Positions 17,483-57,634 of a DNA stretch of 64,000 nt are shown here, piece by piece (positions within the stretch are counted from its first letter, which is position 1; each line of letters opens with the position of its first letter). The notes under the pieces were generated by a model. It was given only the letters and a program-made list of their open reading frames with translations. It was not told where the DNA came from and did no database searches. The translations under genes were made by a program, and so were the position numbers. Origin of the DNA: Trichosphaerium sp. ATCC 40318 (Eukaryota > Protista > Tubulinea); contig JALMLS010000577.1 in assembly GCA_038496445.1 (NCBI GenBank), positions 1,116,001-1,180,000 of the forward strand, given 5' to 3'.

Positions 17483-18883
17483 ATGACATCATTACTTCTC
17501 CTTGAGACGCTCCCTTTGGAGCTTCAAACAATGTTAATCGACATGGACGTTGAATGTTACATTAAATGGCCTTTGCTTTGTCGATACACCTCCGTATCAC
17601 GTTTCGACGATGCGTTTCGTAAATCCGGCGTGGTTGAGAGCTTTTATCCTTCTGGTAATATTGCGAAACGTTTTAACTTCAAAAACGGTCAGGAACATGG
17701 ACTTTGCATTAGATGGTACTCCAATGGTCAGATACTCTCACAAAGTTCTTACCATAACGGCAAACTCAATGGCGACAGCAAAACATGGACACCTAAAGGA
17801 AAAATCGAGTCTGAAGGGCTGTACGAACACGGAGTTATGATTGAGTCCTCAGAGTATAACAACGAAGGAAAGGTTGTGAAGAGTTCGAGAGTGGTAAAAT
17901 ATGAACTTACTAAGATGAAGAAACTCAATGGCGACAGTACATGGCTGCCTAAAGGAAAAATCAAGCCTGCGGCGCTGTACGAACACGTAGTTATGATTGA
18001 GTCCTTAGAGTATAGCAGCACAGGAAGGGTTTTTAGGACTTCGACAGTGGTAAAAGATAAACGTACTGGGATGAAGAAAGAAGAGTATGTCTCAGGAATG
18101 GATATAATAACAAAGATTTATTACAATGAAAAAGGAAAAGAAAAAAAAAGACAACGTTATTGTACCACGGATAAGGCATTACTTAGTGAACGTACACGTG
18201 CTGGTGATGATTTATGGAAAATAACTAATTACCATCTCCGAGGTGTCATGTACGAACAGTATTACGAAAATGGAAAGGGTAAGAAAGAAGGAAAGTACAA
18301 ATATTGGCATGCCTGTTCAAATATTGTGAAAATAAAATGTTCGTATGTCAATGGTAAACAAGTAGGTGAACACATTTATTGGAGTCCAAATGGGAAAATG
18401 GGTTCGCGGTATAACTGCTCAGCTTTGGGGATAAATGGTAAATATGAAAGATGGTATTTATCCGGTAAACGTGAGAGTAAAACTATGTTTGTGAACAATA
18501 TGATGTGCGGAGAACATAAAAAGTGGTTTGAACAAACAGGAAGATTACAAGAACACTTCTTCTATGTCAACAATGAGCTTTGTGGTAAATACCACACATG
18601 GCATCAAAATGGACAATTAAAAAGGAGTTGTGTATATACAGAAAGTGGTATAGAGGGAGAAGATATTGAGTATCATGAAAACGGTGTTATAAGCTCAAAA
18701 TGTTTTTGGGTTAATGGATTGCGAGTTGGAAGACATTTTGTTCAATATGAAGATGGTTCTTTAAAAGAAGAAGTGTATTACAATAAGAAGGGTAGAAAAC
18801 ATGGAGGATATAAAAGATGGAATAAGAATGGTGAACTACATACAAAGGAAAAGTACAAGGATGGAAAATTACAGAGAAAATAA
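17483..18883 (+). CDS. Intronless MORN-variant (YwqK-like) repeat protein with an F-box-like N-terminus
   Basis: 466 aa with many GxxxxWYxNGQ / YxNGKxxG repeats. N-terminus LETLPLELQTMLI. Internal ~159-bp duplication (17762 vs 17921). Confidence 0.85.
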   Translation: MTSLLLLETLPLELQTMLIDMDVECYIKWPLLCRYTSVSRFDDAFRKSGVVESFYPSGNIAKRFNFKNGQEHGLCIRWYSNGQILSQSSYHNGKLNGDSKTWTPKGKIESEGLYEHGVMIESSEYNNEGKVVKSSRVVKYELTKMKKLNGDSTWLPKGKIKPAALYEHVVMIESLEYSSTGRVFRTSTVVKDKRTGMKKEEYVSGMDIITKIYYNEKGKEKKRQRYCTTDKALLSERTRAGDDLWKITNYHLRGVMYEQYYENGKGKKEGKYKYWHACSNIVKIKCSYVNGKQVGEHIYWSPNGKMGSRYNCSALGINGKYERWYLSGKRESKTMFVNNMMCGEHKKWFEQTGRLQEHFFYVNNELCGKYHTWHQNGQLKRSCVYTESGIEGEDIEYHENGVISSKCFWVNGLRVGRHFVQYEDGSLKEEVYYNKKGRKHGGYKRWNKNGELHTKEKYKDGKLQRK

Positions 18884-25093: not shown

Positions 25094-25483
25094 GCATCCC
25101 AGTTTATCACTCCAGCACCACATTGTACATAAAAAGGTTATTCCACTAAAAGAAAGGTGTTGAAATAATAAACGTAGTATTGTACTTTTACTCTGCTTTG
25201 TTTTTTTTGCTGGTTTTACAAAGATTGTAAACAACATTTTTACCCTGCATCTGTTTTAGTGAAGGACGAATGTAGAAGTCCTCTGCGACAACTTTTCCAA
25301 CATGCTTCCTTATCCAAAAAAGCCACTGGTCAAACGTGGCTCTAATCGGTTTTCGTGTAACTTGCACATTCTGCAACTTGTAAAAGGCATGCTCTGCAGT
25401 TGTACACTACTTTCAAGAAGGTGGGCCTTAATTTTGTTCTGTTTAAGTCAAAACGAGTACAGTTTTTCACAATATACTTGCAA

Positions 25484-26459
25484 ATGGCTGCCAGTGCTCA
25501 GGGCAATTCGATTCAACTGAATGAAGACATAATACTACTAATCGCTGAGAGAATTCCTTTCAAAACTTTGAACAACTTCTCTCTCACCTCTAAGAACATG
25601 ATGGTCCTATTATCAAGTAACAGTATTTGGAAGCGCGCTTTCATAAACAAACTAAACTGTTACGCGCCTAAACCCGATTCTACAAATTCAGTGACATGGC
25701 GTGATATGGCTAAGCGCCTTGATAAATCGCTGTTTCCATCACTGAACACGTTTTTGGACGGAGTCGCACAATTTGCTGCACTCAAGAAGTCTACAAATAA
25801 CTTTGATAGGAAGCGCATAGAATCCTTGAGGAACCTCCTTGTCCAGTTCTCAATTTGCCAAAACTTCAAAGAGACTAAAGTAAGTATCAAAGATCCGATC
25901 ATTGCAAAGCTATTTGAAGCGACCGCTTTTACTGAAGTCAAAATTGAGTCACGCTTAACAGGCGACAGATCTTGCGAAAGGAGAGACCATCGAGAAGTCA
26001 ACGTACGTAGCGATAGCCACACCTAATGCAATAGCTCTTAGTTCTATGTAGTGGACGCTATACTCGCTTGCCACTGGTCTACCTGTTCGTATAGAATACT
26101 GGTACTCGTATTCAGGAAAAAGGGGCTGCGTAGATTCTGAGATTTACATGGTAATCGCATACGGCGACAAGCAGCATGAGTGGCTTGAAGAGTATGAAAA
26201 CAATAAAAAGACGCCACTATTACCCGAAAAAGAAGCCAAGGAGCTTGTGGAGTTTATTTTCGGAAAGAGAGTACCTAAAAACGTCCGTGCTCTCATAGGA
26301 TTGTACCTGTGTACGTGTTGCTTTGCATTCACGAGAATTGAACCATACGAGGATTGTAATTGGGATGGCTGCGTAGATTTGATTTTCAGAAGAGGCTGGG
26401 ATACTATGGATGTGTGCGAGTGCGTATTGGGCGGCAATGAAGATAAAGAAAGTAATTAA
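25484..26459 (+). CDS. F-box-like protein, two exons
   Basis: LNEDIILLIAERIPFKTLNNFSLTSK...IWKRAF at the N-terminus, with a short intron near 26003-26051. Confidence 0.65.
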
Positions 26460-29552: not shown

Positions 29553-32500
29553 TTACATTTTCTGGCAAGTTTTACTTGACGGCCAGGCGTCAATGGCTCT
29601 TGCTTTATGAACGATACAATTGATGGTACCTTCTCTACATTTGCAGCGCTATTTCTAAAAGACAAGAAGGCCAGTATAAGCTCAGAATTTTGTTCAAGCT
29701 TTTCAAAATTTACCATATCAGTGCCACTGACTAATAAATAAGTGAGTATAAATCGCGAATGAGCTGTTTAGAATCACTCACTCAAGTTTGGTGTTGTGAT
29801 GCTCAATTCTTTGAGGTCATCACACAATGTCTCAAGATGTGGAGTAACAGCGAGACCAAGTTTTTTGCTGTTTTGTAGTTGTGTTGGGTAGCTCATTCCT
29901 TTATCTTTGAATAAACCATCTAAACCCGTAAAGCGTTGCATGACATCAAATGGTAAAGATCGCCATGTACCCTTAGTGCAATACTATTAGAAAAAGATGA
30001 AAGAAAAAAAGCTTGTATTTGTCGTACTTGCAAGTCTTCGACCGTATTTGAGCGTAAAGCTTTATATATTTCAATAGCTGCATTAAAGTTGCCCAACTAG
30101 AATCACATTAGCTTGTTTTTTGTAAACGATTTGATCACGTTTGAAGTGTTGTTGTAACGTACTTTATAACATCCTTCACAAACTAATATTAGTTGTTTTA
30201 ATACGACAATACGTGGTTGTAGATCACGCTCTTTTACAATCTGAGTTATAGTCCAATTTCTCAAATGATCAGAAAAAGCTCTCCATTTCTCCACAGAAGA
30301 GTTATTGTCCTTGTTTGCTTCCTTGTCATCACTAACCAATAATTCACGTGGTCGAAGGTGCATATATAGTTGGTTGTCCATCAATGTAATTTGCCTCGAA
30401 ACCTCGTTCGGGTGCAACTCTCTAATGCTATCATATTCACTCTTGTTTTTATCATCAGCCCAAAACTCTGGTACAGGTGCTTTCTCATTAGCCCGTAGTG
30501 AAACGGTCTTATTCTTTTTAGCGTCCAGAGCAAGCTCCAAGAAAGTCGCAGATACGCCAAAACCGCTTGCTTTGCAATAAGCACAGAATTTTTCTAACTT
30601 TTGGATAAGTCCTTTTGTCTCTAGAAAATCCTCAAAGTAGTTCTGGAGCCAATGCTTTATAACGCGAGTGATACGTAGGCGTATGTTAAATAAGCCTTTT
30701 TTCTTCCATTTTGGCAAAGATATGTTTACTGGTGGATAGCAGTTCCATCTCAGGTGAAGTAATTCAAGAAGCTCATTTGGTGTTATAAATAAACGGTAGC
30801 TGAGTAGGAAAGCCTTAAAAAACAAGTTAGCCAGAAATCCATCAAAAAAAGCCAAAGACAATTCAATTCAAAGAAACCAAAAAACTTGTCAAGCTACGAA
30901 CCTTCATGAATCCTGCGTGTACAAGCTTTGGTGATGTTAATCGTTGAATAAGCTTAACCATGCTACATCCCTGTTCCAGAAAAGTGTCACTTTAAATAGT
31001 ACAGAACACGTTCAGGATATTTACTGAATTCAAAAAACGTACAATGATAACTTTTTTCTCCATTGCAATGTTTATGCCAAGTACATCTCTTCCCTCGAAC
31101 TCTTTTACTCTAGGATCAGAGCTCTTGTCAAACTATAAAAAGAAAGTACAAGTTATGACCAGCTCTTTGCAACAAAGTTAATTTTTCACACTCACGCAAA
31201 CTGCTTTTTTCTTTTTTCGTCGTTTTCTTTCCCGCGCTTCGACGTCATCTATATTCTTCAGATCAAGAGCCCGCATTTTCTTCGCTTTCTTTTTCTTTTG
31301 TTTTTTTGGCTCATTTGAAGGCAAACCCAGAGACTTTGCTACCCTGTGCAATGTAAGTTAAACGCACATAATTGTTGCACGACAAATATGGCCAATCACT
31401 CACCTATCTCTAAATGATGGTTCTCTATGTAATAAACCCGCGCTTGCGATATCTAAGTCGCACAGAGTTGCTGAGCGTAATTCTCTGGTGGAATTGGAAT
31501 GCCTTGGTTTGTCAATAAACGAAAGATTTTGGTTCAAAAAGTGTAAAGTGAATACCTCAAAGGTAATATAGGCGCAAAGTTGGAGTGTGCTTTAGGTCGA
31601 GCAGAGCGTGGTGTTTGTTGCGGCTAAATGGAGTTATAAGGGAACAGCACTCAATAGTATTAAGCTCACCCGTATGAGTGCCATAGAGCTAGAGCGTTGC
31701 ACTTGCTTTGCGTCATTTTTTTCCTTTTAGAAAGTAAATTACAGTTCAATTGGCTTTAAATCGCACCCCTTGGCGTACATTGCGCATGTTGATCACCTTT
31801 GGCGGTAGTTGGTTAGCATTTGTATTAAACTCCTAACCGTACCAATTGAGAAGAGCTTTGTGATAATTGCATTAATTTTTTGCCATGCCACTTTAGGAAT
31901 GCGTTAAACTCCTTGAGCAAAAAACAAAAAAATACCAAATAAGACTTCTCATCAATTGTTTTTTTACCCGTATCTTACACGGTTTTATTTACAAGTCTAA
32001 GGTACACTTCTACATTATTTACAAATTAGTACAACTGGATAATTGAGTCAAACCGACAGCTCTCTTTTCTTCAATCTACAATATTTTCAAGCGCAGAGAT
32101 TATTTCAGTTGCGCTTGGGCGCTTTTCGGCGTCGTCATGCCAACAGCGCTGTATCAGTATTTTCAAAGCGTTAGCTATATCGTCAGGTATTATTGGCCTG
32201 TACAGAGTGTAAGAGAAGATGCTAATAAAGAGAAAAAATCAAAACAGTACCGTGCGCCGTTCTCACAAATGAAGCTGAAGTACGACTTCGCTGTACAATA
32301 AGCGGCCGGTGGGTACCACCTTGTACCAGTCAGAATCTCCCACAGTAGTATCCCAAACCTGTATTTGTTTAGTACGAATGTAGCGACAAAAAAGGAAAAA
32401 GTGCTGATTGTGAGTGTACCCAAAAATATCAGCCTTCTCATCGAATGGTGCTAGCTTCATTACTTCAGGAGCCATATATAATGCCTAGTTTGATATAAAA

Positions 32501-34612: not shown

Positions 34613-35094
34613 ATGGCTACCATGGTACTATTGGGTAACACAGTTGTTGTACTGACTTCAAACAGGCAGACCTTCCTATTGTGAGCGACATAGCACATGA
34701 GGATGATGAAAAGTACATCATAACGCTTACATCGTGGAATGAGGGCGACAAAAAAGAATACGCATTTGTTTCATACAGTGGGTGCAGGTGCGACTAACCA
34801 TAGCGTCAGGAGTGACCTAAAACATACTACAACACTTGTTGCTCTGAATTGAACGCCATTAGGTACCACAGCAATATAACGCGTAAGTATCGAGAAAAAA
34901 TAGAAGGGAAGGCAACTTGTCGCATTTTAGGAGGTGGCATTATAACAATTGACAACAATAACAAACACATCAAGACTTATGGTCAAAGTGGGGCGTATGG
35001 TCCTCCAAATGAAGAACTGTTGAGAAGAGTTATAGACAAAGTGTTTCCAGACTACAAAAAGGATGTCACTATCACTGATTATGTAAGAGATTGA
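34613..35094 (+). CDS. PHPT1: Janus/Ocnus family phosphohistidine phosphatase-like
   Basis: KYII...YHSNI...CRILGGGIITIDNNNKHIKTYGQSGAYGPP...FPDY. Confidence 0.8.
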
Positions 35095-35256
35095 ACACGT
35101 GCAATTTCTTGATTTGCGAATAAGAACAACCAGATGGCACCTTACAAGAAACTACATTAAAGCCAAGCCGTTCTCACGATTTGTTTTTTCTTCTTTTTTT
35201 TTTGCCTTCTCAAAGAAGGTGCAAATAAAAACAAGAATACAAGTAGCGTTTTGGTC

Positions 35257-36068
35257 TTAAAGACAAAAACCGATCGCAAATCCTGGAGTACCAATGTTGT
35301 TCATTCCAAGAGGATCAATTCCAGACATATCTACTACACTATCACACCAGTTTGATCCAGTATTTGCACAACCTGTACTTTCGCAAAACACGGTCAAGCT
35401 TGTTGAAACTCCTTGAACTGTTTGTGGGAAACCGGCACCGCCTACTGTTTGTTCGAAAACAGGGTTGCCATCACAAGACAGAGTGAATACTACAGCTGTA
35501 TCTGGAGAGAAATTTGTAGGTGGACTGAATTCATAATCATAAGTAAGGCCCGGCAATGTATATTCAGGAAAGTTTTGGTTGTTTCCAAAGACTATTATAG
35601 GGGCTGGCCCGGTGCGCTTCAGTTCTATTCGTGGTAGAGTATAGTCTTGACCATCAACATTCAATATGCAACCCTCTAGGTTTACCACAACAGAATGAAA
35701 AGCTTTATAAGATAACTCAATGAACTGGCCGTCTTGTGGATTCATGCCATTAGGGTTCACCATGAATTCAGTAATAATCATTTGGTCTTTTACCGGTCTA
35801 TACATCATTAATGTTGGAGGGTCTGTCGTTGGTGGCTCGGTCACCATAGGAGGTTGTTGTTGGTGGAGCAGTAGATGGAGCTTCTGTCGTTGGCGCTTCG
35901 GACGTTGGAGGCTCTGTAGACGGAGCGCTTGGTTGAAATGCTCCACAATCTTCTATCTCGCACAAAACGTTGGTGGATTTGTCCGCAGAACAGCATCTGT
36001 CAATAGTTTTAGATGAAATGGGAGGGTATTCGTTTAATTTCTGGTATTGTTCTGCGTTAATAACAATA
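35257..36068 (-). pseudogene. 3' exon of the interrupted secreted gene: Cys-rich segment, PT linker, bacterial-type lamin-tail domain; 1-nt frameshift near 35855
   Basis: From 36068 it reads IVINAEQYQKL...PSTEPPTSEAPTT and needs a 1-nt shift to continue QPPMVTEPPTT...IITEFMVNP...GQFIEL...NWC...GTPG. Confidence 0.75.
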
Positions 36069-39000
36069 CTATTGTAGGGTATCTTCAGAGAAACCCATTT
36101 TGGAACTGATCTTTAATTTATCAGCCCAATTTGCACGTATGTAATGTCGGTCGCTGTCGCTGTTCATACTCCACTTCGCTATATCCATATATACGACTCT
36201 AGGTATGTCACCGTAAGCTGCAAGCGTCGCTCCCGTAATACGGCCTTGTCGACCGCCAGCTCTTCCTTTGTGTCCAGCATATTTAGCAACGCTTTTGAAA
36301 ACTGCTGATATGCCAGATGGACCCAATCTAGTGTTTTTGTTTTTTAATGTAGTGAAAAACGGCTTTGTATTCCACTTCTGAATAAAGTTGATGTAATCGC
36401 GTAATATCTTTACTGGACACATGTACTCGTCGCCAGTCGCATCAATGTTTACCACATGTGGTACTCCTCCTTGTGATGTTTTTGTACGCATAAAAGTGAC
36501 AACGATTTTGCCGTCACGATATACCACATGGTCTCTGTCCAATATTTCTGTCACTTTTGGTCTTTGCATGCATCTGATGTACAAGGCTATGATAGCACCG
36601 TCACGGAAATATTTGTGGTCGGGTACACGTTTGTACGCGTGTTTGCGCCAATGTAAGAGCCATGTCATATCAAATGTTGGCATCTTTTCTTTTCTAGGAC
36701 GCGCTTTTGCAATACCTTTTTTCACTAACGAAAGCAAGTGAGCATCGTCTTGTTCTGTCGGAGGTTTGTATCCTGCTGCATTATGGATCATCGTGATTGC
36801 TGCTGACGCTGTACGACCAATAGATGTAGCGCCTTGTCGATAACGATGTGTAATATACATCGCCACTGTTGCCGGTGTTGTAGGTAAGTATTGAAACTTA
36901 TGATCCTCACAATACTGTGTAAAGAGATACCACTCTCTACCATAAGAATTGTAAGTGTTGTATGCGCTGCTGTCAGCAATAAAAGCACCAATTTGTTTCA
37001 AGTTGATGTCGTCTGCGTTTTCGATTTGAAGTGAACTGCCAAGTACGTCCATCGACAGTTCTTGAACGGTTCTACGAAACCACTTGCCCCTGTCAGAAAA
37101 ACGTCCTGTCCTGAACCGAGCTCGATGAAGTCCGTCTGCATCTGTAGCACCAACGGCCACCAAGGTTGAGCCGCCCACACCGGTAGTACGACTGTTGCTG
37201 TCGCGTTTTGTTCGCGAATCAGTCTTAGCACGCTTCCTATAAGACGTGCTGGAGGACATGCGTAGTTTATCTCGTTCCTCCAACAGGTCTGAAAATTATC
37301 ATGGTATTATACCGTACTTTATGGTATAATCACCTTTTATGGTACAAGCTCAGTATAATCCATAATTATACCATATAATTATACCATAAAATATGGTATA
37401 ATACCATGTTTTTTGGACAAATGGTATAACAGCCATTATACCATGTTTATACCATATTTCAATTTATAGAATATAATTATACCATAAAACATGGTATTAT
37501 ACCATGGTATTATACCACATTTTACAGTACATTATACCATGCATTATACCATATAATTATACCATAAAACATGGTACTATACCATGGTATTATACTGCAT
37601 TTTAAAGTATATTATACCATGCATTATACCATATAATTATACCATAAAACACAGTATTATACCATGGTATTATACTGTATTTTAAAGTATAGTATACCGT
37701 GCATTATACCATATAATTATACCATAAAACACGGTATTATACCATGGTATTATACTGTATTTTACAGTATTGTATACCGTGCATTATACCATATAATTAT
37801 ACCATAAAATGTGGTATTATACCGTGGTATTATACTGTATAAGTATAAGTTAGTCAAAGCTCACTTGGTCTATACTTGATTTAATAGCCTTTGGCCCTAC
37901 GCAAACGCCATACCACACAATGCTTTGACAGTAGCCGTTATTGAACATAATTGGCATATAAATGTGTGAAAAACAGTTTTAAGAGAGAAATCTGGTAACG
38001 CGCCCCAATTGCGGGCGTTTTAGGGATAAATTGGCCAATTTTCTCCGATTGACAGTATTTGAGGAAGAAACCACTCCACGTACCCCATGTTAGAACGCTA
38101 CAGTGGTAGACACACCAAAAACGCGTTTAGCGCTTGAAAAATGCCCATTCGCAAAAAACCTCCAGTTGGAGGTTTTTTTCCCCGGCTCTCATTTTTTTCT
38201 CCCCTCCATAGGCATTTTTACACTCAATCAACGCCATACAGCCTCATTTACCAAATCAGGAGCAAAATTATTTATTTTTTTTTGACATTTTTGATATACG
38301 CTCCAATGCATGTTAAAACGCGTGAATAGTGCTATAAGGCCAAGTTGTTTCAGAGCCTACCCATTTTTTGAGTTTTTTGGTTTTTTTTGGATTTTTTTGG
38401 ATTTTTTTGAATTTTTCCCTACTAAACGCCCGCATTTGCCAGAACAGATAGCATTTAGGCTTCACACCCATGCGTTGACCTTACGAGTGATATTATAAAC
38501 CAATTGGCTAAGTCAGAGCACAAAACTAAGTCTTGTCCAGTTTATCGCCCGCACAACACAAGGTACGCTAAAAGTAGTTGTTTTGAAGCCGCTTGCCATA
38601 GGTTTTAACCAAGCTAAATAGATGATAAAAAAAAAACCAAGATGTGTTAGCTAACAGGTACGATTCCGCTAGAACTTGTTTCCGATGAAGTTGGCAGTTA
38701 TTTTCATTTCTTTGTTTTAGTCTTGGTTTGGCTCCACCACACAGGTCATTTGTTACTCCCAGTGCTGCCACCACAACAAAACAGCAATTTTTGTACGACT
38801 ATTTATTTTGTGCATCAAGCCTTCACTAATTCTTCTTCTAGTTTTCATGCTATGTCCATTCGAAGCACTTACAGCAAGTACAATATTTTTTTTGAAGGTT
38901 ATTTGATGTGTCAACTACCACAAAAGAGGATATGGACAAAACCAAAGGTCACGGATGTAAACAAAAAAATGTATTAATAAATGTGGTTTTATTATTAGAA

Positions 39001-41863
39001 CAGTTTTTACACGGTATAATACACTTGGTTTTGTGGTATAATCTACCAAGTTTTAAGGTATAATATACCAGACTTTGTGGTATTATACTGTGTTTTATAC
39101 CATGTTTTATGGTAGAATTATACCATATATTGCATTTTTTCAGATGAAAAAATATGGTATAAATTCGCACTTTCTACTGCATATTTATGGTATAATTTGG
39201 CTGTTTTATGGTATAAATCCTTTGATTTATGGTATATTATACTGGAATTTGTGGTATAAAATTGTAATCAATGGTATAATTATACCACAAATTCATGGTA
39301 TCTACCATAAAAACAGCTCGAGAATTTTAGACCTGATCCTGAGCCATTCCATTCACCGCTTCTGTGCCTGGTTGATACCAGCGTGTGTTGAAGCGATCCA
39401 GCTGTGTGTTGTATGCTGTTGCGAACCTGTCGACTGTGTGAGGTCCGAACGCTTGCTGTATTTGGTGAAAGAAAGACGGTCTGATCATCCAATCTTCGAC
39501 GTCTATCAATCGACTCGGCCAATCCGCAGAATTCTCCTCGGACGGTATCCACTGCGGTTTTAGCAGTGTTGCATTTTGTTGCAGAAGGAATAACCACGTA
39601 TCCTTCACTATCTTGTCTCGCGCCGGGTTGCGAGATCCTCTCCAAAGCCAAGACACTACGCTGGTGCTGTCGATCTTCATCTGCACTACTCTGTCTTGTA
39701 CAGGGCTGAAACTAAATAAGGCTTTTTTTGCAAAAGCCATTTTTTTGCCACCAAATACAGCCTTATTTTTCACCAAATTGCCTTGTTTTTGCCAAAAAAA
39801 ATGGGCAAATATGAGGCATTGCCTTGTAATTTTGGGCTTTGGAGCCTCATATTTGGGCCAAATAGCAAGCAACTGGTTCACTAATTAGCCTTAAAATAGC
39901 CTGCATTGTTGGTCCAATAATGCCTCATTTTTTGTGCAACAATAAGGCATTTTTGCCCTCAATTTTTGGGCATAACCCAGGCACCATATACTCATAAAAC
40001 AAGGGTTTATATAGGCATACAATAGTGATTCATTTATTAAAGTACAGTACACAAAACACAAAAAACTTCAATGTCCTCCATGTGAAAAAAAACCTTTAGT
40101 TAAAAAAAAAATTAACAAATTATTGGTATAATTTTCGCGGACTGGAAAAATGGTTTAAAGTACCTATACTCCTGTTGTAGGTGGATTTGGGTGCTGCGGT
40201 TCGAATGGCGGTGGTTTCGTTAGAATCCATAAAATACTAAGCGCGTGGTGACGGCGTCTATATAAAACGTCAGTAGTAAATGAAAAAAAAATGTTTAGGA
40301 AGTGTTGGTGTGGTGGAGACTTACCTTAAACCAATGTATCCTTAATGTACAATGTGTACACAACCAATGCCTAATTGGTGCCTATAAATTTAAGGCTGGC
40401 AATGCATAAAAAAACTAGGGCAGGCATTGCCTAAAAAAAACAAGGCATTGCAACAATTAAGGCATTGCCCAACAAAGCCTTATTTCAATGCCTGATTTTT
40501 GCCTTTTCTGCCATTGCCTTTGCAAAATCAGGCATTGCCATTTTTGCATACCTGATTTTTGCCATCAATGCCTGATTTTAAAAAAATGCCTTCATATTTA
40601 AGGCAAAGCCTTGTTTAGTTTCAGCCCTGTATTTGCGCTTTGTATGCTTTGAGGGCTAGATGGACTGCCCATAACTCTAATTCGTTGATGTGCAATCCTA
40701 GTTGAGGTTCGTGCCAATTTCCTCTGGCTTGTGGTAGACCTTTGATTGTTCCTGACCATGCTGCTTCGGATGCGTCTGTCTCGATGATAAATACGGTTTC
40801 TTTTCTCCACAATGTTTTGCCGTTCCATCTCAGAAGTGCTTCTCTCAACCACTCTATGTCTGCTTGTAGTTGAGGGTCTGGGCGTACCAATGAATTCCAG
40901 TTCATCCAAGGCAATGTTACCTGTCCTATCGTGCGGTAAAAGCTGCGACAGAACACTCTTGCTGGTGTGAAAGCTTCTTTGGTTGCAACCAACTTTCCGA
41001 CTATGCTTGACAGCTCTCGTATGTGCACCAAATTTCTTCTTCGAATTGACTTTGATAATTTTTTCAATCCTTCGCGTATGTTTTTGATCTTCTTTGCTGG
41101 TACGCGTAACTCGCCTTTGCTTGTGTCGATGATCATACCCAAGTGCTCTATAACTTGAGTTGCTTCCCAGTGTCCTTTGTCTGGTTGGTTTTGCCAACCC
41201 AGTTTGTCGAACAATGGCTTCAGAATTGTATCTCTGATGTGTATCAATTCGTTCTTTGTAGGGGCTCCGATAATCCAATCGTCGATCCAAATTAAAAATG
41301 TTATTCCCATCTTCCGTAAGTGCCTGACCATAGCACGGTTTATCTTTGTAAACAGCCACGGAGCAAAGCGTACTCCGAAAGGCATTCTTGTCCACCGGTA
41401 AATCTTTCCTTTCCACACGAAGCACAGCCAACGCTGACTTCTCTGATGCATCTTTATGTGATGAAAGCCGGATCGAAAGTCGCCTGAGGCCATCCACCAT
41501 CCTAGACCTATTTGTTTTATGAACACTCCCAGCCCTTCGAACTTTGTGTAAGCTGGAGTGATTCCATTGTTGAGACCTCTTGCATCGAATACCATTCGAA
41601 ACAGGTCTTTGGTTGTTCCCTTTGGAACAAAATGAACTGGACTTATATGAAACGGATTCTCTTCTAACTGAACGACACCGGTTTTGAGAAGCTTCTTTAT
41701 TTCTGAAGTTCCAAACTGTTCTTCCTTCACATTCTTGATCCAATTCCCTCGTCTGTGCTGCCAAACAAGCGGTCGATCTACCAAGAATTCGAACCCATTT
41801 TTGATACCTTGTACTATCCAGTTCTCGGCGCCTATATCTCTCCACCCCTCCCATTTTAACCAC
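36069..41863 (-). CDS. Tyrosine recombinase ORF (interrupted by two TIR elements); N-terminal part overlaps pol in another frame
   Basis: SAM-like TYNSYGREWYLFTQYC...VAMYI, box I CMQRP, RTKTSQ, CPVK, GRQGRITGAT and AKWS...HYIR. After excising both insertions the frame is 2811 nt (937 codons) and open. Confidence 0.9.
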
Positions 41864-42096
41864 GGCGCGTGGGAGGTTGGAGAAGGTTTTTCATTGACCA
41901 CGGCTGCGACCGCGACCACGGTATCCCCCTCGCTGAAAGGCGTTACCACTGGGAGCATGATATTGAGTGCCAGGTGGTGCTCCGTTGTTTCTACCACCAC
42001 TGTTGTTGTTAGTAGCGTTGTTGCTACCACCACCATTGTTGCTGTTGTTGTTGCGTCCGTTACCGCCACGGCCACCGTTACGACCGCGACCACCAC
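36998..42096 (-). CDS. pol: reverse transcriptase + RNase H + DIRS-type DNA methyltransferase-like domain (interrupted twice)
   Basis: RT: DFRSGFHHI, MPFGVRFAP, IWIDDW. RNase H: ETDAS, HINELEL, IDS, NSADWPSR. MT-like: VDRFAT, QDW...NYACPP, LPVWAAQPWW. The reconstituted frame is 2115 nt (705 codons). Confidence 0.92.
37284..39335. mobile_element. Non-autonomous TIR element (2052 bp) with inverted ATACCAT-rich subterminal arrays
   Basis: Ends are CAGGTCTGAAAATT ... AATTTTAGACCTG. TATACCAT motifs dominate the left end and ATGGTATA the right. Removal plus one A restores both overlapping frames. Confidence 0.88.
37471..37840. repeat. 80-bp tandem repeat, ~4.6 copies, inside the 2-kb TIR element
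   Basis: ATATAATTATACCATAAAA at 37471, 37551, 37631, 37711 and 37791. Confidence 0.95.
39701..40629. mobile_element. MITE/non-autonomous DNA transposon, 929 bp, 25-bp TIR, TA target duplication
   Basis: CAGGGCTGAAACTAAAYAAGGCTTT at both ends (1 mismatch), TA at 39699-700 and 40630-31, and AGGCA/TGCC-rich subtermini. Excision restores AQIQDRVVQ in RNase H. Confidence 0.93.
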
Positions 42097-43213
42097 CGTT
42101 ACGATTGCGGTTACGCCTGCTGTATCGACTCTTAATGTTCATAAACTTAATCTTCTTTCGAAGATCACTTTCTTCTTTTGCTTTGATAGCATTGGCCTTG
42201 TCCATGAGTGTTTGATGAGCAGGAGGCATGCTATACAAAGACTTATCCTCCAATACTTGTTTAGTGACATCAACACCAACCTCCTCGATCATAATAATCT
42301 CGGTCATCATCGCCAATATTGGTTTTATGGATGGATCAGAGGCGGGCTTGTTCTCACGCTGTGCAATTCTGCACAAATTCTCGTACTGTTTATACGCAAG
42401 TCGACGCGCTTTCGATTCAACGCCTGTACCCCATGATATGCTGTTTGACGGTTCAAAATATACCAGCTGATGTATATTTGTAGGTAAAGTACCAACTGGC
42501 AAAGAAGGTACATACACTCGATTTGAATTGGGCATAGGGACGTTCGTAGGTACTGAAGGAGGCGCTTGCGTGCGTGTGTTTTGACGTGCCGAAGTATCAC
42601 GCTCATTATTTATCCACCGGTCTTCATGCTCGATATCTCTCATGTCGCGTACGTCTTGATCCTCTTCGAGTGCTCTCGCTAGATTATCCTCTAAAATAGA
42701 ATTCAAATCGCTACACAGAGAAGCACGAAATTCTTTAAATTTGCTGTCGATAATAGAAGAGAGCTGCGTTGGAATAATTTGCGTGCCGTTTAGGGCCTCA
42801 TTTATTACGTGAGGCTCGTTTTTACGTGATTTATCGTCCGTAGACGCCTGAGACGCTTGTCTCAGTGTTAAGGCTTCCTTTACTCCGACAAATATTCTTC
42901 CTTCTTCTATTTTAATCGCTGTGCTTAGGGCAATCTCTAGCTGTTCTTTAATCGGTCGTGTGTCGGGAGATTTGTCGTAACACAAAGTAAAATTATGTGT
43001 TGAGTCGGTGTCGACTAGCAGTCGATATAGGTGATAAGCATTGCCTTCTATGCCATCTCCGGGTAAATATTGCATCCCCATGTCGTGATAAATTTGCTTC
43101 AACCACATCTCGTTAGCCACGCCTAAGCGTAAGGCTGGCATCTTTTTTATAAGGTTTTGCCAATAAATTTCCTTTTTTACCGCTGAACTAACTACGTAAC
43201 TACCTTCAGACAT
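41891..43213 (-). CDS. gag-like ORF of the YR retroelement
   Basis: 440-aa intronless ORF upstream of and overlapping pol, with an RGG/Asn-rich basic tail. No CCHC knuckle seen. Confidence 0.75.
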   Translation of the reverse strand: MSEGSYVVSSAVKKEIYWQNLIKKMPALRLGVANEMWLKQIYHDMGMQYLPGDGIEGNAYHLYRLLVDTDSTHNFTLCYDKSPDTRPIKEQLEIALSTAIKIEEGRIFVGVKEALTLRQASQASTDDKSRKNEPHVINEALNGTQIIPTQLSSIIDSKFKEFRASLCSDLNSILEDNLARALEEDQDVRDMRDIEHEDRWINNERDTSARQNTRTQAPPSVPTNVPMPNSNRVYVPSLPVGTLPTNIHQLVYFEPSNSISWGTGVESKARRLAYKQYENLCRIAQRENKPASDPSIKPILAMMTEIIMIEEVGVDVTKQVLEDKSLYSMPPAHQTLMDKANAIKAKEESDLRKKIKFMNIKSRYSRRNRNRNGGGRGRNGGRGGNGRNNNSNNGGGSNNATNNNSGGRNNGAPPGTQYHAPSGNAFQRGGYRGRGRSRGQ

Positions 43214-43304
43214 CTCACCAGTCTTAAAAATAGCTATCGTAGGATTGCGGAAACGTTGTTACGTTCAAGGAACAAAAGGGCTTAAGAATATCGTATTGTT
43301 AAGC

Positions 43305-43436
43305 ACTTTGAACAATACCTACAATAAGTTAAGTACCATTACTTACACACATAATAACACTAATAGCAGAAAACTAAAAATAGAAATAAAAACCAGTTGT
43401 TTATTTAAGTGAGAATACAATCACGCATTTGTACTT
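43305..43436. repeat. 132-bp direct repeat R, inner copy
   Basis: Identical to 45565-45696. Contains the endonuclease C-terminal codons, the stop, AATAAA (minus strand) and one TAAG-N8-CTTA site. Confidence 0.97.
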
Positions 43437-44207
43437 TAATACCAGCAATAATACAAGAATGTCCACGGCATTGGCCATTTCTCTTACACCATCTTCTTGA
43501 ACTGTTAACTTTACCAGGCTCCAAGACAATGTGATCTGGGTTAGTACAAAAGGTACAATGACACAAGTGTGATGCATCTACTAAAGTACGGGCCAAACCC
43601 GGATACCATAAGTAGTTGCCATCAAGCCCTTTGTCAAACAAAGTAATGCCCTTCTCCACATATAGAACTGTATGGGCTAGATTGAAAAGTCTGCTCATTT
43701 TTCTGGTTCTAAATACAGCACGGAGGTACCCTGCACTAGTGGTTGACCCTCTGGTGCACAATTTGCACCCGGTATCTAGAATATACAATAAGTTTCTGAG
43801 TGATTACTTTGGTTGCTTTGTTAAGGTATACGCTTAAGCACACACACAATAACCCTAATAACAAAAAAAAACAAATTTAAGGTACCTTCAATATCAATTG
43901 ACTTTACTCGCATGGACTTTAACTTTGCTTGGGCAATGTCCCAAGGTAAAGTGCGAATATCTGTGGCAATGTGCCTTACATGAGCATCATTCCATTCTCT
44001 CTTAGGTACACACATTGCAACATAGTCATTAGTGTTCATTTTTCCAAGCGGTGTATTCCATGTTCTAGGCATACGCTTGTGTGGACACAGTGGTGGGTGA
44101 AATGGTTCAACAATGTGAAAGAAAGGAGTTCTTTTAGCAAAGTACAAGGGGCTGTACAGTTTCTCTGGGCCGGTTATGGTGTAGTAATTAGGCAAGTGTT
44201 CACACAT
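43405..44207 (-). CDS. His-Cys box / His-Me finger endonuclease (I-PpoI-like zinc-binding loop), 2 exons, 230 aa
   Basis: Exons 44207-43886 and 43775-43405 joined by a 110-nt GT-AG intron give 693 nt in frame. Motif ASHLCHCTFCTNPDHIVLEPGKVNSSRRWC...CRGH...C. Confidence 0.85.
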
Positions 44208-44329
44208 TCTTGAGGAGGCGTTGTTGTTGTTGTGTTGGATGTAGAATTATGATATAAAAGTAGTCGAGTAAATCGATCTTGTATCACTCAGATTTTTTCA
44301 ATCAACATTTATCTGTTTTCAATCACTGT

Positions 44330-45560
44330 AAAGTGTGTATAAGGATGTGTACTTAAAACGTAATAGCCCGTATCAAACTATACTCAGGATTGATTATGCA
44401 TTGTTGGTTAAGGTAATCAACTTAAAATAAAATAGCCCGTATCAAAGTACAACTTTTCAATCACCTTTTGAATGTGATTAAGGATGTGTACTTAAAACGT
44501 AATGACTCTAATGGTGGCAAATACAACATTGGTTGTTGGCGAGGGTTTTAAACAATCTAATTTGTAGTTGTAAACGCTTTTGGAATCAATCTGGTAACTG
44601 TGTTAAGTAGGTGAACTTAGATCGTAATAGCAACAATCAATCTAGTGTAACTGTTTTAAGGATGGATACTTAAACAACAATGGCAACAATCAATCTAGAT
44701 AAAGTACATTAAGGATGTGTGCTTAAACTATAATAGCAACAATCAATCTAGATAAAGTGTATTAAGGATGTGTGCTTAATGCATAATGGCAACAATCAAT
44801 CTAGTGTAAGTATTAAGCATGTGTGCTTAAACTATAATAGCAACAATCAATCTAGATAAAGTACATTAAGGATGTGTACTTAAAACGTAATGACTCTAAT
44901 GGTGGCAAATACAACATTGGTTGTTGGCGAGGGTTTTAAACAATCTAATTTGTAGTTGTAAACGCTTTTGGAATCAATCTGGTAACTGTGTTAAGTAGGT
45001 GAACTTAGATCGTAATAGCAACAATCAATCTAGTGTAACTGTTTTAAGGATGGATACTTAAACAACAATGGCAACAATCAATCTAGTGAATTGTATTAAG
45101 CAAGGAAACTTAGTGTACAATGGCAACAATCAATCTAAATAAAGTGCATTAAGGATGTGTGCTTAATGCATAATGGCAACAATCAATCTAGATAAAGTAC
45201 ATTAAGGATGTGTGCTTAAACTATAATAGCAACAATCAATCTTAGAGTAATGGCTATTCGCCAATGATACTAAGTAATACAACTTAATACAAGATAGCAA
45301 CAATCTGGATAAAGTACATTAAAGATGTGTGCTTAAACTATAATAGCAACAATCAATCTAGATAAAGTGCATTAAGGATGTGTGCTTAAACTACGAACTT
45401 TGATCGTAATAGTACCAATCAATCTAGTCTTAATGTGTTAAGGTTGAATATGGATTTATACTTCAACTTGTAAAGGATTGGACCTTGAGCTGTTTATAGT
45501 TGTAGTTTTATCAATCCATAATCAGTATTAATCTCAATATGGTTAAGCATGTGTACTTAA
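44330..45560. repeat. ~53-bp-period array of AATRGCAACAATCAATCTAG plus TAAG-N8-CTTA dyads, with an internal 222-bp exact duplication
   Basis: Dyads at 44340, 44409, 44479, 44604, 44657, 44710, 44763, 44814, 44867, 44992, 45045, 45097, 45150, 45203, 45271, (45320, 1 mismatch), 45373 and 45544. 44477-44698 = 44865-45086. Confidence 0.95.
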
Positions 45561-45564
45561 AATG

Positions 45565-45696
45565 ACTTTGAACAATACCTACAATAAGTTAAGTACCATT
45601 ACTTACACACATAATAACACTAATAGCAGAAAACTAAAAATAGAAATAAAAACCAGTTGTTTATTTAAGTGAGAATACAATCACGCATTTGTACTT
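45565..45696. repeat. 132-bp direct repeat R, terminal copy (2 bp from the junction core)
   Basis: Identical to 43305-43436. Confidence 0.97.
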
Positions 45697-45700
45697 CGTA

Positions 45701-47169
45701 CTACGTAGAACAATGTAACATTAGTTTAAAATCTCGTACACGTCATTGCCACCACCTCCATTAATCGTTGGTGGACGAATAGAAGACTGAGTGCTCCCTT
45801 TGGCTGTTATGCGGTCATTTCCATTTCCACCATTGATATTACCACTTCTGGACTCAAAGTCGCAGATATCAATATTATCAACACCACTACCACCATTTAT
45901 GGTGTTAAATATAACATCGTTCATAGCAATATGATCAGCACCACTATTTCCTTTAAAAATTGTCAAAAAACAAGGTTTTTAAAAAGCACGTGACTACGAA
46001 AATAATGAAAAATGGCACGCAAAGCAGATGTAGTGTAAAGATATTTGAGGTTTTTTTTGGGTGAGTTTTTCTTTTACGTTACCTGTAGCTTCGTCAAATT
46101 CTGTTTTGGTTGCTTTTATACAATCAGCTCCAGCGCCACCAATTATTAAATCAATCATAGAACTCATTTGTCTTTTATCTGAACCTACAAGCAAGATAGT
46201 CAGACGAGACAAATAATCACATGGTTTTCTTCGTTTTTTTTTCAAAGACTTTTTTTGTAAAATCCTGTACCTTCACGCTTTCCAGGTTCTGGTCCAAGAA
46301 TGTCAATACAATCAGCTCCGTTTCCAGAGTTTATGTTTCTCCTAAAATAAAAATCAAAATCTTTGAGCGAGGAACATAGAAAACATGGTAATTTTTTTGC
46401 TGAGTTTCGTTTTCGAGAGAAAAAAAAATAGAACAAAACCACTAATCTCGTACGCTTCACAAGAGGTCAATTTTATCCAATCAGCGCCACCATTAGTGAT
46501 GATATCTTTGTAAAAAGTGAGTTGAAGAAATAAAATTGTACCAAAGAAAGTAAATATTAGCTTACCTCTTACAACACTGTTTTTTAGATATACACAATCA
46601 CCACCTGTACCTGTCCAATTTTTTAGCAAGTTACGTAACTTGTACAAAAAAACACTACTGGAGCTCGGTTGACTTACCTGTTTCAATGTCACGAACTTCA
46701 GCACCGTCACCAATAATATATCCACTCCTTCATTAGTGTTAATATCACGTGTTATTTCGCTTCCGGGGTCTAGAAAGACGCAATCGACACCATCCGTTCC
46801 TACTATGACGCGTATACTTGTGTCTGTAGTGACAATAACACAATCCTGATTTCGTATTCCTACAAAGAAAATCTCATTAGGAACAAACATTAGGTGAAAA
46901 AATTGAAAAAAATAAACAAAAGGCATACTATTTCCTTGGCTATTTTGGCTTGTGGCGGTGAAGCAAGTTCCTGCCGCCCTTCGCCACATACAATAACTAA
47001 GATCGCACGGAACGCAATCATCACACGCCTGTGCGTAGCACGAAGCTACTATTGTTACAATGGTAAGTGTTTGAAGGTTAATAGTACAAAACAAACGAAA
47101 GGGGTGGTTAAATACATTACCTAGTAACACAACTAGCGAGACAAAGATGGAAGCACTAAAACCACTCAT
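45701..47169 (-). pseudogene. 5' part of the interrupted secreted gene with RTX/hemolysin-type GGxGxD Ca-binding repeats, multi-exon
   Basis: Signal peptide MSGFSASIFVSLVVLL. Repeats GTDGVDCV, TGGDCV, GGADWI, GNGADCI, GGAGADCI, GGSGVDNI, GGNGNDRI and GGGGND. Last intron is 45739-45701. Confidence 0.8.
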
Positions 47170-56201: not shown

Positions 56202-57634
56202 ATGGTAATACTTCTTCGCCTGAAAAGTTAATATTAACTAAAATCATAGCTCACTCTCGAAAAACGAGTCGAAAATGCTCACGCTGACGAGCTATGGTCT
56301 GTTTGCGTTTGCAAAGATGGCGTACTAACAGGTTCAGAACAATTTCGTGCCAATAGTCCCAACAATCACTTTAGGCGGACTAGATGGTAAATTAAAGAAG
56401 TGGAGCAGCGAATTGGAGCTGGTATCAACCGCCACAGCTTCAAGCCTTGGTGTACTTGATATATCACTTGCTGGTGACAGTACGCACAATGACGTTAAAT
56501 TAAACGCTAAACGCGCAACGCGCGTTTTGTTTTAAAACCAAAACATGTCAAAAACATCAGTTGCCACTCAAAATCACGCTCCTAACACGCAGTAGATATC
56601 ATTACCGCAAGTATGGACGGTAGAATGTCTGTATGGTCATCAGAGGACTTATCGCTTGTTTCAACAGTAGAAACAGATGGTATTGATACTTGGGCGCTAT
56701 CGGTATGTCCACCAAAACCAAATATAGTCGCTACAACAGGTCATTCCGGTGGTATTGACATTTGGGACGTTGAGATCGGGAAGAAAGAGCAAGCCATAAA
56801 AGTTGATGCTAAAACAAAGTTTATAATGACAATAGCATATGTACGTACCGTAAACTGCCTCAACGAAAAGTTCTAGGCAGTACTGATTTATTCATCGCCC
56901 TGTGACTGTTTGAAATGATTCAATGAATTTTTGACATGGTTTTTTTTTTTTGATTGTTTGTTGTAGTCACCAAATGGTGTTTTGTTGGCTGTTGGATCAA
57001 CAGACGGAAGAATATCCATTTTTGATACTTCTGTAGGCAGTGAAAAGCTTGGTATAGAAGGTATATATGTGTAGTGATCTTTGTACACAACGCGATTTTA
57101 TTTATTTTAATCTGTTTTTCCTTCAAACTTTCTTGACACTCAACTCTTTTAGCACACATGAAGCCAATAAGAAAAGTTATGTTTTCTCCTGATGGAACAA
57201 AACTATATTCTGGAGCAGATGACAAATTAGTACGTAGTAGTACAACACCAAGAAAAACACCAAACATTTTTGAAATGCTAAGAGTTCGTCTAAATTTCGA
57301 AAAGGTACACATATATGACGTAGAGACTGGTAGTCTTATTGAAACATTTTCTGGAGCTGGTGGTAGCATACTAACGCTTGCACCAACGCCTAATGGAAAA
57401 CTTCTTGCAGCTGGGTACGTATTAAAAAGGAAGGTAACGAGAATCAAGCTTACTGTGTATAGCTCTGTTGATAAAAGGATTAAGCTTTGGGACTTGCGCA
57501 CAAATGAATGTATTGTAACGTTGAGTGATAGTCAAGGTGAGATATGGGATTTATCATGGACAAAAGATGGTAGACACCTTGGCGTTGCAAGTGCAGATAA
57601 ATCAGCAATGTTGTACAAGTTGCAATCCGAATAA
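56202..57634 (+). CDS. WDR61: WD40-repeat protein WDR61/Ski8, multi-exon
   Basis: ENAHADELWSV, SSLGVLDI, ASMDG, KFIMTIAYSPNG, HMKPIRKVMFSPDG...SGADDK...HIYDV. Confidence 0.8.

Follow-up and report, generated by a model that had tools for sequence, protein, structure and literature searches.

A tandem array of TAAG-N8-CTTA dyads around an I-PpoI-like His-Cys box nuclease gene in Trichosphaerium: candidate recognition sites for the nuclease

Organization of the locus

We analysed a stretch of 64,000 nucleotides (hereafter the window; positions are counted from its first letter) from the tubulinean protist Trichosphaerium sp. ATCC 40318 (assembly GCA_038496445.1, contig JALMLS010000577.1, positions 1,116,001 to 1,180,000), in which an earlier note had drawn attention to an array of short inverted motifs, or dyads, of the form TAAG-N8-CTTA. 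Examination of the region reveals that the array belongs to a 2.4-kb cassette with the layout R-array-nuclease-R, in which R is a 132-bp direct repeat and the nuclease is an I-PpoI-like protein of the His-Cys box group. The relevant genes are all on the minus strand, and read along that strand the order is a host gene, the outer copy of the repeat (R1), the array, a unique stretch, the nuclease gene, the inner copy of the repeat (R2), 92 nt of intervening DNA and a retroelement (Table 1).

The inner copy, R2, holds the last ten codons and the stop codon of the nuclease, including its conserved C-terminal Cys motif, together with an overlapping AATAAA and a dyad at 43330, and it ends 92 nt upstream of the ATG of the gag-like open reading frame (ORF) of the retroelement. 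R1 contains a dyad at 45590, a minus-strand AATAAA and the last 32 nt of the nuclease frame with no gene ahead of them. Since the conserved C-terminal Cys motif lies within R, the source of R is the nuclease gene's 3' end and not the host. R1 would thus appear to be a gene-less copy of the nuclease 3' end, as expected if the cassette arose in tandem or circular-permuted form. The gap that separates the nuclease ORFs holds a diverged third unit of the R type, which aligns locally with R at a score of 39; the highest score among 500 shuffles was 31. R was the only long repeat found by self-BLAST and local alignments, and the same comparisons of R and the 5' region with the 3' end revealed no significant inverted or split terminal repeats, a 10-nt inverted match being within chance. 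Just beyond R2 on the gag side, a full CTTAAG and a further TTAAG are present at 43281-43304; the CTTAAG hexamer occurs nine times in the window, two of these in the cassette region (43281 and 43833).

Table 1. Features of the dyad cassette and of the genes adjoining it
Feature	Positions	Strand	Basis or remark
R1, outer copy of 132-bp direct repeat	45565..45696	-	100% identical to 43305-43436
Tandem array, 16 perfect TAAG-N8-CTTA sites and one mismatched	44316..45559	.	Tandem Repeats Finder, self-repeat families D1/D3/D5, site list, column statistics
Unrepeated stretch, array to nuclease start codon	44208..44315	-	sequence read directly
I-PpoI-like His-Cys box nuclease gene, two ORFs	43405..44207	-	Pfam, PDB sequence, alignment, AlphaFold2 (AF2), Foldseek
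Diverged third R-type unit with TAAG-N7-CTTA	43822..43876	.	in gap between nuclease ORFs
R2, inner copy of 132-bp repeat	43305..43436	-	repeat comparison, ORF list, sequence reading
gag-like ORF, 440 aa, Gly/Arg/Asn-rich tail	41891..43213	-	position only; no Pfam match
pol (reverse transcriptase, RNase H, methyltransferase-like tail)	36998..42096	-	RVT_1 2.7e-14; ORF pieces
ORF in tyrosine-recombinase position, 404 aa	36069..37283	-	position and C-terminal motif read by eye
TAAG-N8-CTTA outside cassette, sole one	36885..36900	.	inside the ORF in tyrosine-recombinase position; chance-compatible (1.98 expected in window)
229-aa ORF downstream of the ORF in tyrosine-recombinase position	35257-35946	-	no Pfam match
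Host gene, several short exons, signal-peptide-like start	45721..47169	-	weak HemolysinCabind match (RTX nonapeptide)

The His-Cys box nuclease gene

Between the two R copies, the only ORFs longer than 70 aa on the coding strand are the two assigned to the nuclease gene (128 aa and 127 aa), which are in different frames, approximately 30 nt apart, and were searched and modelled separately. The second ORF matches the Pfam family zf-His_Me_endon (PF05551) with an E-value of 6.4e-11 (43 bits vs a cutoff of 27), and the best PDB sequence match of the nuclease is I-PpoI itself (4.9e-5), with an alignment that covers the SHLCH...N core. A multiple alignment of 54 sequences showed that S73, H74, C76, C81, H86, N95 and R98 are invariant and that C101, C107 and C124 are nearly so. 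The AF2 model of the nuclease ORF has a mean predicted local distance difference test score (pLDDT) of 93, and in Foldseek its top four matches are all I-PpoI at probability 1.0, though with a template modelling (TM) score of 0.37 over 79 columns. The order of the structural matches is I-PpoI-DNA complexes, I-HmuI, and then NFI dimers and the Smad MH1 domain; the NFI structures are those of dimers on a 5-bp dyad, whose spacer is fixed in length and free in sequence. Judged by both sequence and fold, the predicted protein belongs to the His-Cys box group.

The first ORF showed no homologue in a word search, and only a weak short-motif match to the N-terminal part of full-length relatives (e.g. 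P0068). Many frame-compatible GT..AG intervals exist between the two ORFs, one of which, 110 nt long, preserves the motif spacing of the relatives; a spliceosomal-type intron linking the two ORFs is therefore a candidate, though it would be shared by no relative. No Rfam match to a group I intron or rRNA was found in 35000-47000 at E-values up to 1. Searches with HMMER using the nuclease ORF recovered 255 relatives, the best of them at 40% identity. The nearest relatives (37-42% identity) are encoded at loci L001 and L046 (JGI sample 3300035016) and L041 and L048 (GCA_049309705.1), where the neighbouring ORFs showed no family matches except for a Myb-like ORF in L041.

The dyad array

The array is a tandem repeat of 1.2 kb with a core unit of 53 bp, each unit bearing one short inverted motif (TTAAG-N8-CTTAA). 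Tandem Repeats Finder reports periods of 53 (5.9 and 5.3 copies, 78-79% matches), 104 and 388 (2.0 copies, 93%). The core units span 44584-45250 and 45293-45430, and are accompanied by units of 69/70-bp and 125-bp types and by a 388-bp higher-order duplication. Within the array a stretch of 222 bp is duplicated at 100% identity, and the two R copies are likewise identical, a sign of recent turnover of the repeats. The units are direct repeats in a single orientation, i.e. head-to-tail copies of one unit, as in a minisatellite.

A recount of the dyads agrees exactly with the 19 perfect sites and one mismatched site (at 45320) given in the earlier note, one of the perfect sites being in each R copy (43330 and 45590), and the ten 8-mers it listed as spacers are precisely the set present. 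Across the window TAAG-N8-CTTA occurs 20 times against 1.98 expected, a number reached in none of 100 dinucleotide-preserving shuffles, and 19 of these 20 sites fall within 43330-45605. Four base pairs of each arm are kept in nearly all sites; the arms extend to five (TTAAG-N8-CTTAA) in 12 of the 19, making this the commonest 5+5 dyad of the whole window, and the density of TTAAG and CTTAA in 43214-45700 is about ten times that in the rest of the window. Longer arms are confined to two or three units. The proposed complementarity of the outer arms thus holds at 45145-45170, where extended arms of 9 bp can be read, but beyond the T/A pair at +/-9 (12 sites) it is found in just those few units.

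Other elements of the original description require adjustment. The spacer is exactly 8 nt in all perfect sites, but in the diverged R-like copy at 43822 it is 7 nt. The statement that most adjacent sites are 51-53 bp apart was too strong, as only 9 of the 18 intervals are of this size (the remainder being 46, 68-70, 102, 125, 171 and 1010 bp), and the suggested phasing by five helical turns reduces to the unit length of the 53-bp core. Finally, the spacers do vary, with ten different 8-mers, but 12 of the 19 are variants of a single 8-mer.

These counts have to be read against the repetitive nature of the array. Random 53-mers of the same composition contain on average 3.2 dyads of the 4+4 type (with spacers of 0-12 nt), 87% of them have at least one, and 45% have a 5+5 dyad. 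The raw site count is inflated by tandem duplication, and given how commonly a random 53-mer contains a dyad, the excess over shuffled sequence shows amplification and not function. The array might be an ordinary minisatellite, in which a 53-bp unit that carried a dyad by chance was amplified by unequal crossover, with patchy conversion among few independent units creating the semblance of constraint. Besides the frequency of chance dyads and the inflation of the count of 19, this explanation draws on the derivation of most spacers from one 8-mer, on the loss of the dyad in one unit and on the fact that constraint could not be seen in any external copy, none having been found in the collections searched. 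The pattern of conservation within the units, to which we turn below, makes it rather unlikely.

A further suggestion of the earlier note was that the array is transcribed and each dyad hairpin processed to small RNAs. Stems of 7-10 bp can indeed be formed in three units (44763, 44814 and 45150; -7 to -11.5 kcal/mol). However, the array folds no better than its shuffles (z-scores of -0.45 for the plus strand and -0.85 for the minus strand), most units reach only -0.5 to -5 kcal/mol, and in several of them the best fold differs from the dyad hairpin. Compensatory extension of the stems is not general, and Rfam gave no match within the array. On this evidence processed hairpins are the least probable of the explanations considered here, and we regard them as highly improbable.

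Mosaic conservation within the units

To compare the units independently of the dyad, they were anchored on a 20-nt block that follows each dyad, which yielded 12 units, 10 of them unique. Among the 10 unique units, cells that depart from the column majority amount to 4 of 80 (5%) in the arms and 20 of 80 (25%) in the spacer. The two flanking variable stretches reach 31% and 34%, and the 20-nt block, at 4.5%, matches the arms in conservation. Three mismatches in the arms set the unit at 45386 apart. The N8 of the array units is free of indels, whereas indels of 1-2 nt occur in the upstream variable stretch. Furthermore, TAAG/CTTA at a spacing of 8 is the sole dyad register present in 8 of the 10 unique units, the next independent registers being present in 4 of 10. 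The dyad is also retained in unit types that lack the 20-nt block (44340, 44409 and 44479, of the 69-, 70- and 125-bp types), in R1 and R2, and in the diverged R-like copy.

This pattern bears directly on the minisatellite explanation. Homogenisation of whole units would not give 5% divergence next to 25-34% in adjoining segments of 4-8 nt, nor would it account for the avoidance of the N8 by indels, or for the survival of the dyad register in the 69-, 70- and 125-bp types, R and the R-like copy, where most other positions differ. Nevertheless, the contrast between arms and spacer is moderate evidence for constraint within one locus, because the units are paralogues of one array and not independent samples. 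The earlier claim of retained arms around a changing centre therefore stands within this locus, with the qualification that a second block is equally conserved and that the spacer does not exceed the unit's two other variable stretches in variability. Taken together, what the earlier note observed was partly confirmed and its interpretation partly supported.

The presence of two separately conserved boxes in each unit, joined by variable linkers, points to a serious rival explanation, and the main one, which was absent from the three models put forward earlier. The units might be promoter or enhancer monomers, with a dimeric transcription factor of the host bound to the dyad and another factor to the CAATC-rich 20-nt block, and their number would have grown because each addition strengthens transcription of the nuclease gene or the retroelement downstream. 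Tandem monomers of this kind are common in the 5' regions of mobile elements. Consistent with this, the units are direct repeats in one orientation, and the array ends approximately 130 nt upstream of the nuclease ATG, with a T/A-rich, TATA-like run, a candidate promoter, about 45 nt upstream of that ATG. On the other hand, the host factor is a hypothetical one, and neither the dyads in the inter-ORF gap and the 3' repeat R, nor the encoding in the neighbouring gene of a fold of the dyad-binding kind, are explained. We consider amplified regulatory monomers somewhat unlikely, yet deserving of serious attention.

A possible relationship between the dyads and the nuclease

The dyad sites flank the nuclease gene on all sides, being present in the upstream array, in the gap between the two ORFs and in the 3' repeat R. 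Their geometry is also distinctive: positions +/-5 to +/-9 from the centre are conserved, with TTAA in each arm, and positions +/-1 to +/-4 are free. The arm centres lie 13 bp apart, which implies a site of 16-18 bp. I-PpoI acts as a homodimer on a 15-bp semi-palindromic site, and loses cleavage upon changes at +/-5 to +/-7, with those at +/-3 and +/-4 being partly tolerated (PMC2034468). It leaves 4-nt 3' overhangs of the sequence TTAA (PMC9587614). In light of these parallels, we tentatively propose, as the leading possibility but at less than even likelihood, that the array consists of tandemly amplified sites recognised by the presumably dimeric His-Cys box nuclease whose gene lies directly downstream.

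Under this proposal each nuclease monomer would read one arm at +/-5 to +/-9, with the central positions being tolerated. Binding at many sites beside its own promoter could result in self-regulation of the nuclease. If the sites are also cut, the breaks would fall within the cassette's own repeats, and their repair from neighbouring or homologous repeats might lead to gain and loss of units, to identical R copies and to the spread of the cassette into homologous repeats. A comparable process was proposed for the KolobokP DNA transposons under the name of induced unequal crossover, in which a nuclease cuts in repeats and thereby generates unequal crossover and multimers (PMC9587614). Both binding and cleavage, along with their consequences, are inferred here. 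Of the three models of the earlier note, that of operator or decoy sites for the nuclease fits best, in view of the I-PpoI core and fold, of the dimeric binding to dyads by proteins with this fold (PMC2034468) and of the sites that surround the gene, though this fit is one of geometry and neighbourhood.

Several points weigh against the proposal that the dyads are sites of the nuclease. It draws on geometry and neighbourhood at a single locus, and the conservation contrast comes from non-independent, paralogous units of one array. With approximately 20 cleavable sites kept around it, the nuclease gene would be in danger from its own product, and classical homing endonuclease genes disrupt their own target. 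The dyad arms, at 4-5 bp, are unlike the half-sites of I-PpoI, and a dimer on the dyad does not explain the conserved 20-nt block. The arm conservation in the R-like copy has a probability of about 0.19 at the 81% identity of its flank. Placement upstream of a TATA-like run would suit ordinary enhancer repeats equally well. Lastly, the loci of the nearest nuclease relatives (40% identity or less) are without dyad arrays or tandem repeats, these being on contigs that are short or unrelated.

The adjoining retroelement and its neighbourhood

The element beyond R2 encodes a gag-like protein and a pol with reverse transcriptase (RT), RNase H and a tail with a Dam-type methyltransferase match (E-value 0.057, 13.5 bits) that is below the cutoff. 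The pol is interrupted by two nested insertions of foreign, repeat-rich DNA. The ORF that follows gave no Pfam match even at an E-value of 10 and no PDB sequence match, and its single-sequence AF2 model has a pLDDT of 32; its designation as a tyrosine recombinase (YR) is thus an unconfirmed assignment by position. With this layout, the element appears to be a defective DIRS-like retroelement. The cassette may be a component of the retroelement, or it may have inserted separately into the nest of elements.

The proximity of this element brings up the remaining model of the earlier note, in which the dyads are core sites of the YR of the retroelement, with inverted arms around an 8-bp crossover spacer and with alternative spacers defining compatible pairs. 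In lox and FRT, arms of about 13 bp surround an asymmetric spacer of 8 bp. The 8-nt spacer of the 19 sites is non-palindromic and falls within the 6-8 bp of the asymmetric lox/FRT type, the inverted arms resemble the same geometry, and an ORF in the YR position does adjoin. Moreover, one spacer is common to seven perfect sites (eight with that at 45320), which would permit deletion and duplication in steps of 53 bp. However, lox and FRT are single sites at defined junctions, and a recombinase monomer takes an arm of about 11-13 bp, whereas here there is an internal array of 20 copies, at neither a terminus nor a junction of the element, with conserved arms of just 4-5 bp. No terminal or split repeat partner of R was found near the 3' end, and the ORF itself has no recombinase profile or structure match. 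Furthermore, pol is broken by two nested insertions, yet 100% identity is seen between the R copies and in part of the array, which suggests that their turnover is independent of the retroelement's own enzymes. The core-site model is accordingly weakly supported, and we consider it very unlikely.

An association of another kind with the same element can be envisaged, in which the free-standing nuclease gene, with its candidate intron, would be a passenger or parasite of the family of YR retroelements that carries a tandem array of its own dimer sites, fixed in the arms and free in the centre; if these were broken or bound, the cassette and R would be copied by way of the repeats. We view this form of the relationship as unlikely, though worth stating alongside the tentative proposal of nuclease sites.

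A second copy of the array, of R, or a close relative of the element's proteins was not detected in any collection searched, and the exact look-up of seven ORFs of the window showed them to be absent. Relatives of the RT were found at only 25-30% identity. The 18-nt dyad pattern gave 37 single chance matches in metagenome and viral contigs, and no array among them.

The larger of the insertions in pol contains dense subterminal repeats of a palindrome-rich motif of 10-13 nt and an 80-bp tandem array. It also gave Rfam matches to miRNA precursors that stay below threshold (42.9 bits at best, with a gathering score of 89) and seem to stem from its inverted repeats. On the other side of the cassette, the host gene at 45721-47169 has GGxGxD-type repeats, and its introns measure about 60-70 nt. 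With its stop codon 24 nt short of R1, that gene would be expected to have its poly(A) signal where the AATAAA of R1 lies. The 229-aa ORF directly downstream of the ORF in the YR position may be an exon belonging to a host gene that flanks the insertion. Further host genes, at 17483-18883, 25400-26026, 30103-30861 and 57158-57634, encode MORN repeats, F-box, RasGEF and WD40 domains; together with a G+C content of 38% and the short introns, these domains show a compact eukaryotic genome, neither human nor viral. Two other tandem repeats are present in the window, one of 156 bp at 17762-18079, inside the MORN ORF, and one of 66 bp at 498-753 (3.9 copies, 92% matches), which overlaps two minus-strand ORFs.

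Relationship to known systems

In the literature searched, His-Cys box nucleases are known only from group I introns of rDNA and, since 2022, from the KolobokP DNA transposons described by Kojima and Bao (2022; PMC9587614). KolobokP resembles the present locus in being a eukaryotic mobile element whose long terminal direct repeats enclose the gene of a small I-PpoI-like His-Cys box nuclease, and its non-autonomous members, of 1.7-3.3 kb, are comparable in size to the 2.4-kb cassette. The differences are nonetheless considerable. The KolobokP repeats are approximately 450 or 660 bp long and have inverted ends of 11-18 bp, whereas R is 132 bp long and has no inverted termini; the TTAA duplication of KolobokP is not seen at the cassette ends; and a tandem dyad array, present here, is not described for KolobokP. 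Moreover, the partner of the nuclease in KolobokP is a DNA transposon, while the neighbouring partner element here has an RT. Membership of the cassette in KolobokP was considered and rejected on repeat length, on repeat ends and on the absence of a DDD/E transposase from the region that the R copies enclose.

The nuclease shares with I-PpoI the catalytic Ser-His...Asn core, the zinc ligands and the fold, at about 25% identity over 79 aligned columns. I-PpoI targets a multi-copy sequence, with strict outer and tolerant inner positions (PMC2034468, PMC9587614). In contrast to I-PpoI, however, the present gene lies neither in a group I intron nor in rDNA, and its site would be one of 16-18 bp with a free centre, intact copies of which stand beside the gene. 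In the structural comparison, I-PpoI and I-HmuI were followed by NFI and Smad MH1. The MH1 domain is considered to be a homing endonuclease in degraded form (PMC5714182); NFI and Smad MH1 have lost the catalytic residues that the present nuclease keeps.

The retroelement in turn resembles the DIRS group (DIRS1-like and PAT-like elements; PMC4157794) in the order of its parts, with a gag-like ORF, RT, RNase H, a putative methyltransferase-like tail and a further ORF in the YR position, all on the same strand. It differs in that neither the inverted terminal repeats with an internal complement nor the A1-B1-A2-B2 split repeats of that group were found here. For the DIRS group, the literature searched describes neither a nuclease of this kind nor a dyad array.

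Implications

Should a host factor bind the dyads, the locus would be one of ordinary amplified regulatory monomers in a mobile element. If instead the nuclease gene is a passenger or parasite of the retroelement, the locus would add to KolobokP a second and independent example of a mobile element that combines a homing nuclease with direct repeats, the first such example to involve a retroelement.

The interest of the proposed nuclease sites comes from the situation in KolobokP, where the target of the nuclease is unknown and a role in repeat-driven multiplication has only been proposed (PMC9587614). The present locus sets a candidate target, namely a short dyad of fixed spacing with conserved arms in many copies, directly beside a His-Cys box nuclease gene. 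If our proposal is correct, the idea that such a nuclease cuts its own repeats would become checkable by sequence comparison and structure, and the pairing of homing nucleases with mobile elements would extend to the neighbourhood of retroelements.

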